Shown one piece after another: positions 29,123-38,060 of a DNA stretch of 64,000 bases. Made by a program: the position numbers and the translations under genes. Location of the stretch: positions 1,364,001-1,428,000 of the forward strand of contig JBLDXI010000003.1 of NCBI GenBank assembly GCA_047495785.1. Reading direction: 5' to 3'. Position 1 is the first letter of the stretch. The number at the start of each line of letters is the position of its first letter. The stretch is from Lepidodermella squamata. Its lineage: Eukaryota > Animalia > Gastrotricha. A model generated the notes under the pieces. That model was not told where the DNA came from. It saw only the letters and a program-made list of their open reading frames with translations, and made no database searches.

Positions 29123-30848
29123 TGGATACATTGAATTCGCAGACTATAGCGAAAATCGTGTAGTCTTTTGACTAAATTAAATGTCTTCGTTGCGATGAGG
29201 AGGAACGTGAGCAGCCGAGTGTTTACAACTCATTCAAAGCGCTTCAATTTAACTCTTCAATCGCATTGTAATGAAACATTGAGTTACTACACGTAATAAA
29301 CTCATCTGGGCTTTGTTTTTGCTAAACTTTCTAACCGGAAGCCGACATTTCCGCTATCCTGAGTATGTATCACTTTCGAAAAGCTCCAAAAATGGTAGAC
29401 AAAAAGTAAAGCCGATAAAAAGCTCACATTGATGGATGTGGCGGGACTTCTTTTCGACCCCAGAACTCTTGACCGAGCCGAAACACTGAGTGACGTTTAA
29501 CCTTCCATTCGATCCATGCAACACTACAGAGACCCGAGATTTATTTCAGATATGGCTGGTAAAAGCTACGAAATTCGAAATGATAGCGTGTTCCGAAGTA
29601 CATCAACACTTCAGGATCCTATCTGCCGTTTATGATGCCGACGAGGACGAGCTGATCTTCTATCTTCGATCTTCCTGTACCTTTTTTGGAGAAACCAGAA
29701 AACCACCTCGGGGATATACAACAACATGATAAACAAGCTTACTCGCAGCTCGCAGCTTGGAAAACCGAGCTTGTCGATTGGTCTTATTTCCCAGATTGAG
29801 CTTTGCATGGTCTAACTAAACATCAAATGGCAAGAAAAAGTTAATGAAAACCGAAGATCGAAGGGCACTCAAATTACCTCAATCTATTGATTTCATTATG
29901 GGATTTCATTCATTCATTGATTTCATTATGGGAATTATGGCTATTTTTACATAAAAATATCATAATTAAATCCCTGAATAAGCGAGCCAACCTCATAATT
30001 CGATTACAAAATTTACCAAATGCGGCAATGGGGAATGAGCAAGTGGGGTACACCCTAGAGACCACCTTAGACCCCAGACACCCTAGTAGTCTTGAGAGTA
30101 GGACTACACAACTCACAGCTGGTAAGGATAAGAGATAAGATCGTCATATCGACCGGTTCAGAACTTTCCAACGATGAATGATGATTGATAATTTACTGAT
30201 AATTTTGACGGTAATCCCAACTGTTTATTATTTTCCTGTATCAGTCAGTTAAATTCAAAGTCATCGTCATGGACTTCAACAACAGGTCAGCCTACCATGA
30301 GGAATTTTCGCATCAAAAGTTCTATTAGCAGAAACACTTTCCCTATGTTTCATCAATTTATATGGAGTCTATGCAGATGGGCTGAATATTTTTTTACAGT
30401 ACAGCTTGTGGCTTGTGATTTACAGCTTGTGATCGATAAAAAAGTGGGATCATATGTATTCATTACATACATTATTTATGATACAAAATTATTCATCTTC
30501 CATTTTCACTCTTTATGCGAAACACTGAATCCATGATGATTCATCTTAAATTATAAATATCACACTCCCAGTAGCACAATGCAGCATTTTGTAAGCAAGT
30601 AGCAAGTAATTGTGTAATGCTATCGGCTATACATAATTTAATGTAACATCGAAATCGCGGTGTAATTTGGAAAGCGGCACTAATCCATTCGCGATGCAGC
30701 CCCGAAATATGATTCGTAAAATGATTCAACTTAAATTCAAGATGAATAAAGAAAATTGTATATAAGCCATATACAGCCGCTACAGCAGCCGCTCATTACA
30801 CCACCTCTACGTGAGTATTAATGTTCTAGTCAAATAAAAAAACTTCGA

Positions 30849-32454
30849 ATGGATAATGAAATAGCTCCGCGTTGTGCTAGGCGGGCACAGCAAATTCTCG
30901 GAATCATTGTAGCCTGCTATATGAGCATTGTCGTGGACGGCCACTTTTACGCTTTCGGCTTGCTGAAACTGGAAATGGAAAAAGAATACCCCGAAATTCC
31001 AACCGAATCGATCTCGCTGATAGGCGGTCTCTATGCGACGTGTTACCTACTTTTCGGTAAGATTACGTAACTTTTATCGAATTAATCCGAAAATTTTACT
31101 TCCAGCTCCGTTTGGCATGGCTATCCTCGCTGCGTTCGGCCTAAAAACTGTCTCAATCCTGGGTACCTCACTTCATGTCTTCGGATTTTTTCTTGCCTTT
31201 CTCGGGCAATGGATCAAATGGGGATTCGTCCTAGATGTAATATTTGTCGGAATCCTACCAGGTCAGTGATTATCAAAAAGCCTACGTTTTTCATTAATCC
31301 CTCAATCTAGGCATTGGCGGTGCGCTTATGTTCGGCCCTTCTATTGTTGGAGCGCCTGATCAATACGGGAAAGATGCGGGAATTCACAAGGCTATCACCA
31401 CTTCCATCGCAACGGCTGGTTCGCCTGCTGGGGCTCTGCTGTACGGCTTCCTGTTCAAATACTTCCTGATGGCAACGCCATTCGGTTGGCGGGGGGTTAT
31501 GTTGTTCTACGCCATCATGGCCGCAATAATCATCCCTCTAGGCTTCACATTCTACAAACTACCAGAGGACCCTCTACCAGCCGGGCAACGCCCTCCGACC
31601 GCATTGCAACGGTTTAAAGACAAAGTAGCTGGCCAGTTCACGACGAGGATTTGGAGCTGCAACAACAAGGCGTTCATAGCTTTTCTCATCTCAACGTCAT
31701 TCGCTGTTCTGGGATATCCAGTTGCAACTCTTCTCGTCAACACGATGGCTAAAGACCCCACAATGGGCATCAGCGATACCACAGAGCGAAATCTCATATT
31801 CTACTGGGGAATTTCAAACATCATCGGCCGTTTGACGCTTGGCTCGTTGCCAAAATGGGCTAACAGAAGCAAAGTTTTGTTTTCATCCTATTCTATCTAC
31901 GTCATGTCGCAAATCCTATCGGCTGCTGATGTTTCATTCTTCCCACTCTACATGTCCAGCGGGGATGTTGCTTTCATCCTTTTCATCGTTTCCTACGGCT
32001 TCATCTCTGCGCCAATCATGGCGATTCGCAGCACGTATCTAGGCGATTTATTCTACCCGCGTGACAACAAAACGACCGAGCAGGAAGCTAACGAAATCAA
32101 GAATGCCTCTTTCGGCTGGCAATTGGTTAGTGATGGCATATTTGCCTGGATCGGCTTCTACGTTTCAAGTAACCTATTTTCGCTGTAAATTGTATCTTTC
32201 TAAACCACTTTGTTTTAGCTATGTTGAACAACATTTCACCTTGGTACAGTTGCCTCTTTGCCGGGGGTACTTTGTTAGCCGGTGCCATCACGCTAGCCCT
32301 CACGTTCAGTCCCTACTTCAGAGGCCTCGATAGTAGACTCCAGCACGAAGCAAGGAATGCTTCGGGAGCAGAAGCAGCTGCTGCTGAGATAATTCCTCTA
32401 GCAGGAGCAGCTGCTGCTGAGATAATTCCTCTAGCAGAAGTTGGTTCCGAGTAA
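30849..32454 (+). CDS. MFS transporter, divergent SLC16/monocarboxylate-like
   Basis: Exons 30849-31056, 31105-31261, 31311-32168, 32219-32454 join in frame. About 12 hydrophobic segments; FGWRG and NIIGRL motifs; duplicated AAAAEIIPLA at the C-terminus. Confidence 0.8.
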
Positions 32455-32590
32455 TTCGGATGAACATTTCCTGTGATTCGCCCTAGCATCAAAGAATTTA
32501 GAATAAAATAAAAAATTCAGCTAATTGTTTGAAATTTCTTTCCTTAGACTTTATAAATCTGTTCTTAAAATTGCGAAGCATCTGCGAAGA

Positions 32591-34414
32591 ATGGCGCAAC
32601 AATTGTCGCTAGGCGAAGCTAGAATCTCGCAACTCCGAGCCCGATGGAACACGGCTTCTTATCCCGAGCAACGGGCCTCTTCAATGCCTGATAAGCAAAA
32701 GGTTGTTCTGCCAATATCTGGCCAGCGCAATAAACTGATAACAAGCGCCCTGCCTTATGTCAACAACGTGCCGCATCTTGGCAACATCATCGGCTGCGTG
32801 CTGAGTGCTGATATTTACGCGCGATTCTGCCGCCTGCGCCGCTACAACACGCTGTTCATCTGCGGAAGTGATGAGTACGGCACAGCAACGGAAACCAAAG
32901 CTATCGAAGAGGGCACAACGCCGCGGCAGCTTTGCGACAAGTACCACGAGATTCACCGCGCTGTCTACGATTGGTTTCAGATCAGCTTCGATCATTTCGG
33001 CCGAACTTCGACCCCGCAGCAAACTGAGATAACCCAGGACATTTTCTGGCGTCTTCACAAGGCTGGACTGATTACAAGCTCGTCGGTCGAACAGTTGTTC
33101 TGCGATAAGTGTGAACGATTTCTGGCCGATCGTTTCGTCGAAGGCACGTGCCCGAAGTGTCGCTATACGAATGCGAGAGGCGATCAGTGTGACAAATGCG
33201 GTTCACTCATCAACGCTGTTGAACTTGAGAAACCGGTCTGTAAAATCTGCGGGGATGAGCCGAAAATCGCGAGCTCAGATCATCTCTTCCTTGATCTAGC
33301 CTGCCTCGAGCCGAAGGTTCGTGATTTCACTGAGAGGTCGATGTCGAACGGCGACTGGACCGACAACGCTAGGGCAGTAACTCGGGCCTGGCTGAAAGAT
33401 GGGATAAAGCCGCGCTGCATCACTCGTGACTTGAAGTGGGGGACGCCGTGCCCGTTGCAAGGCTTCGAAAGCAAGGTTTTCTACGTTTGGTTCGACGCTC
33501 CGATTGGGTATATTTCGATAACGGCGCAATACACCAGCGAATGGCCGCAGTGGTGGAAGAACCCGGCCGAGGTTCAGCTGTATAATTTCATGGCGAAGGA
33601 CAACATCCCGTTTCATAGCATCATTTTCCCGGCCAGTTTGATTGGCGCTGAAGACAACTACACGCTAGTTAACCATCTGGTCGCGACTGAGTACCTGAAC
33701 TACGAGGGCGGAAAATTTTCGAAAAGCCGTGGCCTCGGCGTGTTTGGTAGCGATGCTGAAACGTCCGGGATCTCAAGTGACTACTGGCGATTCTACCTTG
33801 TTATGATCAGACCTGAAACAGCCGATTCCGCCTTCAAATGGGCCGATTTCGCCGCACGAGTCAATAACGAGCTGTTAGCCAATTTCGGAAACTTTGTCAA
33901 CCGATCGCTGAGTCTTTGCTTTAAAAACTTCTCTGGAAAGTTGCCGGCAGTTGGGAATCTTACCGAGGACGATTGTCTCTTTCTGAACAACGTCGAACTT
34001 GAAATGACAGGCTATCAGGCAAATTTAGACAAAGTCTTACTGCGAGACGGTCTGGTTTCGGTTCTGGCCATCTCGAGGCTAGGCAACCAGTATTTGCAAG
34101 CGAATGAGCCGTGGAAATTGTTGAAAACTGACAATGATCGCGCGGGAAGTGTCGTGGCTATCGCGTGTCATGTCGTCGCAATTTTGTCAACATTTATCGA
34201 ACCCTACATGCCGGAGACTGCTGGTAAAATGCGGCAACAATTGGGCATAGCCGATTCGCCGACTGGGCTATCTTTGGAGGCGGAGTCGCCTAATTTCAAA
34301 CCGATACTCCCGCAAGGTCACAAGATCAATGAACCCGTTCCACTTTTCACAAAAATCGAAGAGGAACAGTGGAAAACACTGGCCGAGAGATTTGGCGGCT
34401 CACTCCAGCAGTGA
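32591..34414 (+). CDS. MARS1: Cytoplasmic-type methionyl-tRNA synthetase (intronless, core domains only)
   Basis: [16 protein letters not shown] (HIGH), Zn knuckle CxxC motifs, [15 protein letters not shown] (KMSKS). No N-terminal GST or C-terminal WHEP appendix. Confidence 0.97.
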
Positions 34415-34510
34415 ATCGAATTTCATGTTTCTTCAGCAGAAAGAACAAGTAAAATGTGTGGATAATAGTTTTCTTTTTCTTTTTCATTAGACCAACTAAC
34501 TTTTATTGAA

Positions 34511-35614
34511 ATGGATCGTGTTATGCGTGAAACAGCTGGGCAAGCGTCGTTTTTATTCACCTCCGAATCAGTCGGCGAAGGTCATCCGGACAAATTATGC
34601 GATCAGATAAGCGACGCTGTAGTCGATGCCTTCCTCGCCGTGGATGCCGATGCCAAAGTTGCCTGTGAAAGCGCTGTCAAGTCCGATGAGGTCTATGTCT
34701 TCGGCGAATTCACTTCAACCGCCGCTGATCGGGTCAACATCGACGCAGTGGTGCGTGACGTCATTCGTAGCGTTGGCTACAGCGATGCTGAAACCGGCAT
34801 TGACCCGGAAACATGCCAAGTCCGCGTGAAACTCGAGGGCCAGAGCCCAGAAATCGCGTCAGCTGTTCACATTGATAAATCAGTTGAAACTACAGGTGCT
34901 GGTGATCAGGGTATGATGTTTGGCTATGCGACCGATGAAACGCCCGAATTTATGCCACTTTCACTTGTTTTGGCTCATAAGCTCAACAAACGTATTGCGG
35001 AGCTGCGGCGAAGCGGGGTCTTACCCTGGGCAATGCCTGATTCGAAAAGCCAGGTTACGGTCGAATACAACTGGCAAGGAGGAACCGTGGTCCCGGTTGC
35101 AGTCACGGCTGTTGTCATATCGATACAACACAAAGCAACGGTCACGCTCGACCAGTTGCGCCGGGCTTTGTTGCAGCATGTTGTGAAACATGTTATACCG
35201 GAGAAACTTCTCAGCGACCGAACTGAGATGATCCTCAACCCAAGCGGTTCGTTCATCGTTGGCGGGCCCAAGGGCGATGCGGGTTTGACAGGCCGGAAAA
35301 TCATAGTCGATACGTATGGGGGTTGGGGCGCTCATGGCGGCGGTGCGTTCTCGGGCAAGGATCCGACCAAAGTCGACCGATCAGGCGCCTACGCGGCGCG
35401 CTGGGCTGCGAAATCGCTCGTGGCTGCTGGGCTATGTCGCCGGTGTCTTGTGCAGCTGTCCTACGCTATAGGTCGTTGTGAGCCGGTGAGTATCACTGTC
35501 TTTGATTATGGCTCCGCGAAAGGCGACCTGACGGCGGATGATGTATGTATTTTTAATCCGGTAAAGCAAAGACAGAAAACTTACATTATGAAAGCTCAAC
35601 TTAAAAATGCCTAA
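34511..35614 (+). CDS. MAT: S-adenosylmethionine synthetase (MAT/MetK); last ~50 aa of the family not found
   Basis: [52 protein letters not shown]. Similarity stops at a GTATGT donor-like site at 35543. Confidence 0.9.
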
Positions 35615-38060
35615 GCTTCTAAACTTTGCGATGGCGCTCCTCGTCATCATCGGAACGCAATGCTCCTTAGCTCAGAGACCGCCTAGGAAAATCCGAATTC
35701 TCGCTTTTGTTATGTATTCTGGATTCCCGCCATTTGACGGCAAAACCTGCTCCGCCGCTATGAATGTCGCAGTTTCTGAAGCTAACAAGCGAGTTGACCT
35801 ACTGCCTGGCTACTTAATCGAAATGACATTTGCAGACGAAGGCGCTGGAGCTTCAAAAACAGCTAGTAACATAATGTCTTACATCAACTCATTCGATGGT
35901 GGAAGTTCCGACGTAAGGTCGCCGGTAATGATCGGAGCCTATCAAACCCCTGGTTGCTTACCAATAACTCCAATGCTGCCAGCAATATGTTCGGTCATGC
36001 TAGGGATCGGCTGTAGATCTCCTGCTGCAACGGATAATCGGCAGAAGTACAAAAATCTCTACTGGGCAAGAGGGCCCTCTGAAATGATAGCATTCAACCG
36101 CGTCCAATTCATCAGGAAATTCGCCCCATCTTGGAATAAACTCGCAATCATGACAAATACCCTCAACGAGTTCGACTATTTGACTGCAAGGTATTTTCAT
36201 AATGTTGCGACCAAGGTTGGATTTCGAATTATCTGGTACAACGCGATTTTCGGGATGAGTGAAGAAACTGCTGGTTCTCTTAAGGACAGCCAGGCTAGAG
36301 TCATCATCATTGACCTTCAAGGAGCTTTATTCATCGAAGTTATGTGTAAACTTTACTGGAAGAGTGTTACTGGGCCAAGATATGTATTCATAACCCCTAC
36401 TTACAACTTCATAGATCCGAGGACTCAGCCTCCAGAGCCATTTCCAGGTTGCTCGAGGGCAATGTTCTCTAGTCAGTTGGAAATCGTCATCTTCATCGGT
36501 CAAATGTTGGGGGCGATTGAAAATAACGGCATAACCTCGTTAGGCTACGACTTGCCTGCATTTGAAGCAAAATTTGATAATGCAACCAACAGCTTGCGAT
36601 CTGCTGAGTATGGTCTAAGACATGTGTGTCATGACTCCGTAATGCAAGCTATGTTGATACTGAATGAAACTAACAACAAACTACAGCTTCAACACAATCT
36701 GTCTCTCGATGCGATTTCGCAGTTTCCTAACCTCGTCTCGAAAATCGCCAATGATTCTGCAGGGCTGGTGACATTCACCGGACTTAGAATAGGATTTGCT
36801 GCTTATTCCAGCCGGCTTCATTTCGATGACGAGCCTTACGTTGTAGCACAGTGGTCGAATGAAACTGGCTATCGATCTATCCTTAAGATAATGCATGAAG
36901 TTCGGACGGATTTGTTCAACGACTCGACGTATACTTTCAAAAGATTTGGCGAGCTCAAATGGAGAACGCCTAGTGGTCTGCCTCCTATTGATTACCCTAG
37001 TCAAGTTGAAGTGATCGATAGGGTGTCTAAAACATCTTTCGGGGTCATTACATGTCTATCGTTGGTCCTATCCCTCTCGCAAATTGCTTTGCTTTTTGTT
37101 ATGAAGTCAAGGATGAGTTCGAATGATCTGTGGTTCAAAAGCTCGAAGGTATTCACTACTTGCTCATGCTTGGTCGAAAATCTAGCGGCTATCATGTTTG
37201 TCCTAACTGCATTCGAGAAGGCTTCTATTAACGCTACCTGTCGATTTCAAGCCGGTCTATTCCTCCTCGGAATATCGATAGCTAACGGCCATCATTTTGC
37301 TAGAGCTCTGGCTATTCGTCTCAGTATCAGGGAAGGAATAAGAAGCCGAAAGATTCAGATAAATCCAGGCAATACGGCTTCAATACGCACGAGAAGCTAC
37401 TCAACCTCAAAACGAGAAAGGCGTGCAAGTGCATGGGAAGTTACAACTCGAGTTCCAATCAACAACCTTCGACCCGAAATATTCCTCTTTTCGCTTTTCA
37501 TCATTCTAAACTTGATTATCTTCATAGCCTGGTTCACAACCGATCCGCTACTGCATAGGATAAAACAAGTTGGACCTGTGAAGTACCTTGAGGTTGAAGA
37601 TGTCGAGCTAACTCAAAAAGCTCAGTCTTGCGAACCTATTCATGATTCAACTCCATGGATATTTGTGCTTTTCTCCATTCACGGCATCGCTTTGTTTTCA
37701 ACCATCAGCATGTGCTTTGAGATAAACAGTTTCAAGATTTTGATGCCTGAAAATACGCAGCTTGCTTGCATGAGGATAGCTAGTTTGGGCTCGACCAGCT
37801 TACTCGCCGCCATGTTAACAGTGTATTATCTACTTCACAATTCCTTTGCTAAACAATCGATGGTGGTCGCTGTAGCTTTATTAATTCTATCTTCCGGATC
37901 GTATGGCATAACGTTTTACCCATTTTTCAAACGAAGGCAAGAGGAAACTGAGCCGAATGGGTTAAATGGCTTGAATTCAGTGTACGGCAGCTCTCTAAAT
38001 CAAAATCGTAGTGTGAAAAGTTCTCATCATAGAAAAGGATCATTTTTGGCTATTAATTAG
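35607..38060 (+). CDS. Class C GPCR, GABA-B-receptor-like (intronless)
   Basis: Signal peptide; Venus-flytrap motifs ([32 protein letters not shown]); 7 TM segments with WFTTDPL; no Cys-rich linker. Confidence 0.88.

Follow-up and report, generated by a model that had tools for sequence, protein, structure and literature searches.

Introduction

In spliced-leader operons, such as those of the SL2 type in Caenorhabditis elegans and those of Ciona and Oikopleura, unrelated or loosely related genes share a strand and are separated by some 100 nucleotides (nt) or less, and the polyadenylation (poly(A)) signal of the upstream gene leads into a U-rich stretch and then an unpaired 3' splice site shortly ahead of the downstream ATG. 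Here we examine a locus with these same features in the gastrotrich Lepidodermella squamata, at which a gene for methionyl-tRNA synthetase (MetRS) is directly followed by one for S-adenosylmethionine (SAM) synthetase (MAT). The locus lies in a stretch of 64,000 nt (contig JBLDXI010000003.1 of assembly GCA_047495785.1, positions 1,364,001 to 1,428,000, forward strand), referred to below as the window, and positions are given in the numbering of the window unless a contig is named. Unlike the described operons, the locus has shown neither a leader nor a precursor, and its distance from signal to acceptor is only about 43–46 nt. We found no paper on gastrotrich operons or trans-splicing, and the genome paper for this species (PMC11660948) mentions neither.

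Other described systems also offer a basis for comparison. Stop-codon read-through extensions (the peroxisomal MDH1x and LDHBx and the Drosophila examples) consist, as would be the case here, of a single in-frame UGA followed by an open frame. Unlike this locus, however, those cases have UGA-CUAG or UGA-C and a conserved extension, whereas here the UGA is followed by A, the extension shows no conservation, a further splice would be required, and one allele has lost the frame. In animals, read-through is favoured by UGA-C and UGA-CUAG contexts. The fused synthetase GluProRS (EPRS) resembles a supposed MetRS–MAT fusion in that two enzymes acting on amino acids would be joined in one protein, but EPRS is one continuous open reading frame (ORF) with conserved WHEP linkers, and the present locus comprises two ORFs, each having a stop and a start of its own, and a MetRS that lacks even the usual WHEP and GST domains. 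Last, the locus is comparable to conserved metazoan microsynteny pairs, in that MetRS and MAT adjoin in a coral, a crinoid, an acorn worm, amphioxus and the gastrotrich; it is unlike a microsynteny pair with a single cause in that the orientation varies and no such pair is found at the MetRS genes examined in Lingula, Bugula and a sponge or at the long paralogue of amphioxus.

An earlier, sequence-only reading of the window had observed that MetRS and MAT share a reading frame and are separated by one UGA once a 42-nt intron has been removed from the spacer between them, and had offered a read-through fusion, a recently split fusion gene or a bicistronic methionine-partitioning unit by way of explanation. 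We have weighed these possibilities using paralogues within the genome, assembled sequencing runs that carry the locus, and the surroundings of MetRS in other animals.

Results

MetRS and MAT appear to be two separate genes in an operon-like cluster (MFS transporter, MetRS, MAT; Table 1), and the supposed intron to be an intercistronic module, a reading that we regard as rather probable. The genes of the cluster are on one strand and the spacers short, at 136 and 96 nt in the window and 91 nt between MetRS and MAT in a second copy of the cluster on another contig (C11). The spacer ahead of MAT holds a hexamer, a U-rich tract and an acceptor, and the spacer between transporter and MetRS repeats the arrangement with AATAAA (32502–32512), a U-rich tract and the acceptor ttccttAG/AC (32546–32547, the slash marking the junction) 43 nt ahead of the ATG; the same layout in both spacers fits an operon-like cluster. 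Considered as motifs, the complete module of hexamer, U-rich tract and acceptor occurs in three of the four spacers of the window and C11, with a hexamer-to-acceptor distance of 43 nt between MetRS and MAT, 46 nt between transporter and MetRS, and 44 nt between MetRS and MAT in C11, while the acceptor TAG/AC is found in all four. Furthermore, AGTAAA is kept in C11 (CAGTAAAAT) and is mutated to AGGAAA in a dead copy of the pair on contig C73, and the block from hexamer to acceptor is the best-kept part of the spacer relative to C11, at 73% identity against 62% just past the stop.

According to the mechanism that we propose, AGUAAA would act as the signal by which the MetRS mRNA is cleaved and polyadenylated, the U-rich tract would come next, and the lone acceptor UAG/AC would then set the 5' end of the MAT mRNA, which would probably be made by spliced-leader trans-splicing. 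Trans-splicing, the poly(A) site and co-transcription are inferred from these sequence features, and the reading frame that the two genes share is most likely a coincidence.

Several observations weigh against an operon-like cluster. The spacer between transporter and MetRS in C11 is without a canonical hexamer, and the assembled contigs show neither a spliced leader nor a poly(A) site nor polycistronic RNA at the locus. The GT..AG signals of the candidate intron match those of the real introns in quality, and are as such consistent with cis-splicing. Last, excision of the equivalent 43-nt GT..AG element from the C11 spacer leaves a linker of 48 nt that is again in frame and open, which is mildly unexpected for non-coding sequence (about 1 in 6 by chance) and is the one point that favours a fusion.

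The quality of the splice signals is also what lends some credit to a different account, whereby the genes are separate, MAT transcription starts in or near the end of MetRS, the GT..AG element is a cis-spliced intron of the 5' untranslated region or is unused, no transcript is shared and trans-splicing plays no part. Donor and acceptor fit the loose consensus of real introns here, and C11 has retained the donor GTAAAAT as well as the acceptor. On the other hand, six introns placed by homology or RNA measure 50–58 nt, with loose GT(A/G/T) donors (those of the paralogous pair A, described below, were placed by joining exon sequences in a script), and the elements at issue are only 42–43 nt long, a discrepancy of which the sequence-only reading had itself warned. 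The promoter and first exon would moreover have to fit within 34 nt or sit within the MetRS coding sequence, and the upstream spacer repeats the layout with a plain AATAAA. We consider this account unlikely, if by no means negligible, and retain the operon-like cluster as the preferred reading.

With respect to a leader, nematode SL1 is absent from the genome, and a spliced-leader gene was not recognised in the fetched spacer of the ribosomal DNA (rDNA), which was inspected by eye only. A scan across the window for hexamer and acceptor modules ahead of long ORFs encountered too few gene starts for statistics. The rDNA unit is itself of some interest: it measures 8,460 bp (contig C2, 2905400–2914100), Rfam places 28S, 18S, 5.8S and an antisense 5S in it, and its 2.15-kb spacer contains the opposite-strand 5S rRNA gene and, twice, a 26-nt element (ACCACATGCAC.TGGTCATTGGCGAC). 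Many such arrays exist across several contigs, some of them inverted.

The most far-reaching of the earlier proposals is that of a programmed read-through fusion, in which a dicistronic mRNA loses the 42-nt intron and some ribosomes pass the UGA at 34412–34414, so that a MetRS-linker-MAT chain is made. The geometry that prompted it was described correctly: the ATG of MAT (34511) is in the frame of MetRS, and excision of the GT..AG element from the 96-nt spacer removes both of the other in-frame stops, TAA (34463–65) and TAG (34466–68), to leave an open linker of 18 codons. The spliced path is in frame and open in C11 as well as in the window, and both enzymes use methionine and ATP. The frame match is not beyond chance, however, because dinucleotide shuffling of the spacer left one or more open in-frame paths in 34% of cases when any GT..AG of 30–70 nt was allowed to be excised, as the reservation expressed along with the proposal had anticipated. 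Were the donor and the acceptor both fixed, the chance would be about 8%; the real spacer offers three open in-frame GT..AG paths, namely the candidate and two alternatives.

The linker itself does not behave as coding sequence. Its translation shares only 3 of 16 residues between the window and C11, and the spacer diverges by 38% from stop to hexamer (with several small indels), 27% from hexamer to acceptor and 30% from acceptor to ATG, whereas the flanking genes differ by 2–5% at codon positions 1 and 2 and by 34–35% at four-fold sites. As the divergence of the linker, 30–38%, is about that of four-fold sites, it evolves as neutral rather than coding-like DNA. The stop context is likewise poor, as had been conceded from the start: the window reads UGA-AUC, and C11 reads UGA-AAU.

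Two runs carry the locus, one RNA-like (X1) and one of DNA (X2), both in the form of assembled contigs, in which a hole in coverage proves nothing. The X2 contig at the locus (depth 54.7 of 93.7) lacks three single nucleotides of the U tract and has gained a G after 34494, such that the spliced linker of this allele would be 55 nt and the unspliced spacer is 94 nt, both out of frame; the upstream reach of the contig was unseen. X1 covers MetRS and MAT to 34811, and the depth in the bin 34444–34627 is fully accounted for by a contig starting at 34532. The joint 34448/34491 is absent from the contigs of X1 and X2, although this is a weak negative given that apparently no contig extends over 34444–34531. 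A spliced linker, were it to exist, would yield IEFHVSSAERTNQLTFIE-type peptides. Among relatives, the MetRS-linker-MAT model was searched as separate pieces, and no MAT domains were found in the best 120 relatives of MetRS. The MAT portion of the would-be fusion is, in addition, truncated in the window. Taken together with the odds of such a path arising by chance (8–34%), the neutral linker and the out-of-frame allele, these results make programmed read-through very improbable, and the proposal is not sustained. Reassignment of UGA was also considered and rejected, as long ORFs end normally with the standard code.

An ancestral MetRS–MAT fusion that was recently split by a stop codon has the shared frame in its favour and nothing else. 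The TGA is at the same place in the window, in C11 and in the dead C73 copy; the older pair A elsewhere in the genome has the opposite gene order with a gap of 760 nt; and in four other phyla the two enzymes are encoded by separate genes, in tandem, head-to-head or tail-to-tail. A split of this kind is in our estimation extremely improbable, and we set it aside.

The family searches that identified the paralogues were made across the whole assembly, which totals 121.2 Mb in 151 contigs; the published genome, obtained from amplified DNA, has 122 Mb, 157 contigs and 43% G+C (PMC11660948), and the G+C content of the window is 42%. Contig C11 contains the same transporter, MetRS and MAT cluster, collinear with positions 30608–35542 of the window at 84% nucleotide identity, and the proteins are 93–95% identical (MAT 95%). 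MetRS of the window, which together with its C11 counterpart we designate MetRS(B), differs from that counterpart by 4.8% and 2.6% at codon positions 1 and 2 and by 34% at four-fold sites; for the 344 retained codons of MAT the corresponding values are 3.2%, 2.0% and 35.5%. The contrast of low divergence at positions 1 and 2 with high four-fold divergence indicates that both genes are under strong purifying selection. In the dead MetRS and MAT copy on C73, by comparison, the GT of the hexamer has become GG, the ATG has become ATT, and large parts are deleted. Dead pieces of MetRS(B) and MAT(B) are scattered over several places of this 525-kb contig, among them the MetRS–MAT remnant with its spacer.

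Beyond these copies of pair B, the contigs C21 (2356000–2365000) and C25 hold 97.7% identical alleles of the older pair A, in which MAT(A) precedes MetRS(A), both genes have introns of 52–58 nt, and the proteins are 61–70% identical to those of pair B. MetRS(A) carries a lysine-rich C-terminal tail that is absent from pair B. A lone MAT(C) is found on C54, and the only other notable hit, on C1, is a leucyl-tRNA synthetase. Every MetRS gene of the genome thus adjoins a MAT gene. Trees were built by a short search with few taxa and midpoint roots, that for MetRS with a single exon of pair A, and that for MAT from query-anchored columns merged from tblastn matches across exons. The former makes A the sister of B (SH-aLRT 99), the branch leading to B being long, and the latter separates A, B and C, as a group, from the five MATs that are linked to MetRS in other animals. 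These arrangements fit a duplication of the linked pair within the gastrotrich lineage, which would have given rise to pair A, with its introns and with MAT ahead of MetRS, and to a fast-evolving, intronless pair B.

The surroundings of nine animal MetRS loci, taken from among the relatives of MetRS(B), were looked up, and all nine results were confirmed by tblastn on the fetched loci. In five of the nine a full MAT gene immediately adjoins MetRS, across gaps of 1.3–4.5 kb and in four phyla besides that of the gastrotrich. The short paralogues of Branchiostoma lanceolatum (608 amino acids) and B. belcheri are head-to-head with MAT, 1.3 and 1.4 kb apart; in the coral Pocillopora verrucosa MAT precedes MetRS on the same strand by 1.3 kb; and the arrangement is tail-to-tail in Glandiceps talaboti (3.2 kb) and Antedon mediterranea (4.5 kb). 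For the long B. lanceolatum paralogue, and for MetRS of Lingula, Bugula and Corticium, the 10 kb around the gene contain no MAT. Given the few MAT genes in genomes of hundreds of Mb, a single adjacency of this kind is expected by chance about once in several thousand; five pairs in four phyla, along with the gastrotrich, are not due to chance, and the pairing is old. As orientation changes among lineages, the conserved cause cannot be one promoter or transcript common to all. The MetRS tree groups the short paralogue of amphioxus with its long counterpart, and as such the linkage across phyla may be ancestral or partly convergent. We found no report of MetRS–MAT linkage in the literature searched.

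The copy of MAT in the window is incomplete. Collinearity with C11 stops at exactly 35542, after residue 344 (...LTADD), and the C domain, PF02773, is represented only by positions 1–98 of 138. The C11 protein is complete at 408 residues and aligns end to end with human MAT1A; the last 64 residues, which include the conserved block FDLRPG...PIY..TA.YGH, are absent from the window copy, and a tblastn search with the C11 C-terminus found nothing further in the window. An X2 contig continues past 35542 as MAT-like sequence (LRSVVAANFD) that is neither that of C11 nor found elsewhere in the assembly, and in a second X2 contig the downstream gene is preceded by a different sequence. It is thus probable that an intact allele exists and that the haplotype of the window carries a deletion, and less likely that the junction at 35542 is an assembly error. 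The retained portion has diverged little at non-synonymous sites, which argues that any loss is recent. Continuation of MAT through an intron at 35543 (GTATGT) was considered and discarded, there being no C-terminal exon in the remaining 28 kb of the window.

It may be asked whether the window then represents a decaying allele, with no working MAT at the locus and any coupling of the two genes carried by C11 and the intact allele. The partial C domain, the loss of the conserved C-terminal block and the continuing version in X2 are all in keeping with this, while the strong purifying selection on the retained codons argues to the contrary, and the assembly was made from amplified DNA (PMC11660948), such that the junction could be an artefact. 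Decay is, in our view, a serious possibility that nonetheless falls short of being probable.

The features of the locus are collected in Table 1. The translation of MetRS(B), from an ORF of 32591–34411, contains HLGN and KFSKS, motifs of the HIGH and KMSKS types that mark a class I methionyl-tRNA synthetase, with both catalytic and anticodon-binding domains found. It is of a core-only cytosolic type, without GST-N and WHEP domains, and its best relatives are animal cytoplasmic MetRS at 57–61% identity. The GST-like N-terminal domain and WHEP, which are usual in animal cytoplasmic MetRS, are missing from both gastrotrich paralogues, and likewise from the short, MAT-adjoining paralogue of amphioxus. 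Look-ups of the exact MetRS and MAT proteins matched no record, and when the initial 100 residues of MAT served as query in a word search, only relatives with identities of at most 63% were returned. In the transporter, exons ending at 32168 and spanning 32219–32454 flank a 50-nt intron (32169–32218), and the frame is continuous once it is spliced; the joint 32168/32219 is present in a spliced contig of run X1, and this contig originates from the C11 paralogue. A direct duplication of 33 nt is found in the C-terminal coding region of the transporter (32372–32406, AAAAEIIPLAG repeated), and one X1 contig skips one of the 33-nt units, so the copy number may vary among copies or alleles. The next gene downstream of MAT in the window has no homology to the sequence that follows MAT in C11.

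Table 1. Features of the transporter, MetRS and MAT cluster and its borders (window coordinates; a slash in a motif marks the splice junction).
Feature	Positions	Strand	Basis or remark
MFS (SLC16-like) transporter, 3' exons	31298–32454	+	PF07690 MFS_1; first gene of the cluster; TAA at 32452–32454
Transporter–MetRS spacer, 136 nt	32455–32590	+	Sequence
MetRS(B), intronless, 607 amino acids	32591–34414	+	PF09334 (5e-149; positions 2–390 of 391) and PF19303; stop TGA
MetRS–MAT spacer, 96 nt	34415–34510	+	Sequence
AGTAAA, probable poly(A) signal of MetRS	34448–34453	+	Contains the GT used as candidate splice donor
Candidate GT..AG intron, 42 nt	34449–34490	+	Sequence
U-rich tract and unpaired acceptor cattAG/AC, probable trans-splice site	34469–34490	+	20 nt ahead of the MAT ATG
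MAT(B), intronless SAM synthetase, residues 1–344	34511–35542	+	PF00438 and PF02772 complete, PF02773 partial; homology to the 408-residue C11 copy
Unrelated tail of 23 codons and stop, past the breakpoint	35543–35614	+	Collinearity with C11 ends at 35542
Membrane protein of 817 amino acids, signal peptide and ANF_receptor domain	35607–38060	+	PF01094; ATG overlaps the end of the MAT ORF

Discussion

Of the explanations put forward in the sequence-only reading, the bicistronic methionine unit comes closest to what we observe. The operon-like cluster, the poly(A) and acceptor modules and the recurrent linkage all speak for it, and the two genes may be co-transcribed and perhaps functionally coupled. 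The two fusion proposals are not supported. Read-through would have to contend with a neutral linker, a broken frame in an allele, a poor stop context and relatives of MetRS that are without MAT domains, and the notion of a split fusion gene with the fact that pair A and the pairs of four other phyla all consist of separate genes in varying orientation. Frame coincidences over short spacers are, in any case, common.

With respect to the origin of the pairing, we tentatively entertain the idea that an ancient MetRS–MAT pair predates the split of cnidarians and bilaterians and has been kept adjacent through inversions and duplications because co-regulation benefits the division of methionine between translation and methylation, having become in the gastrotrich a compact, co-transcribed operon with the transporter; we would rate this as possible, though on the doubtful side. 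In the preferred reading, too, the adjacency itself is inherited, as a MAT–MetRS neighbour pair is present in cnidarians and deuterostomes.

The locus exemplifies operon-like packing in Gastrotricha. More generally, MetRS and MAT, which compete for methionine and ATP, have neighbouring genes in at least five animal phyla, with varying orientation. If it is true that this linkage is under selection, MetRS and MAT would constitute a rare metabolic pair that is conserved across animals, and would provide a handle on the balance between translation and methylation.

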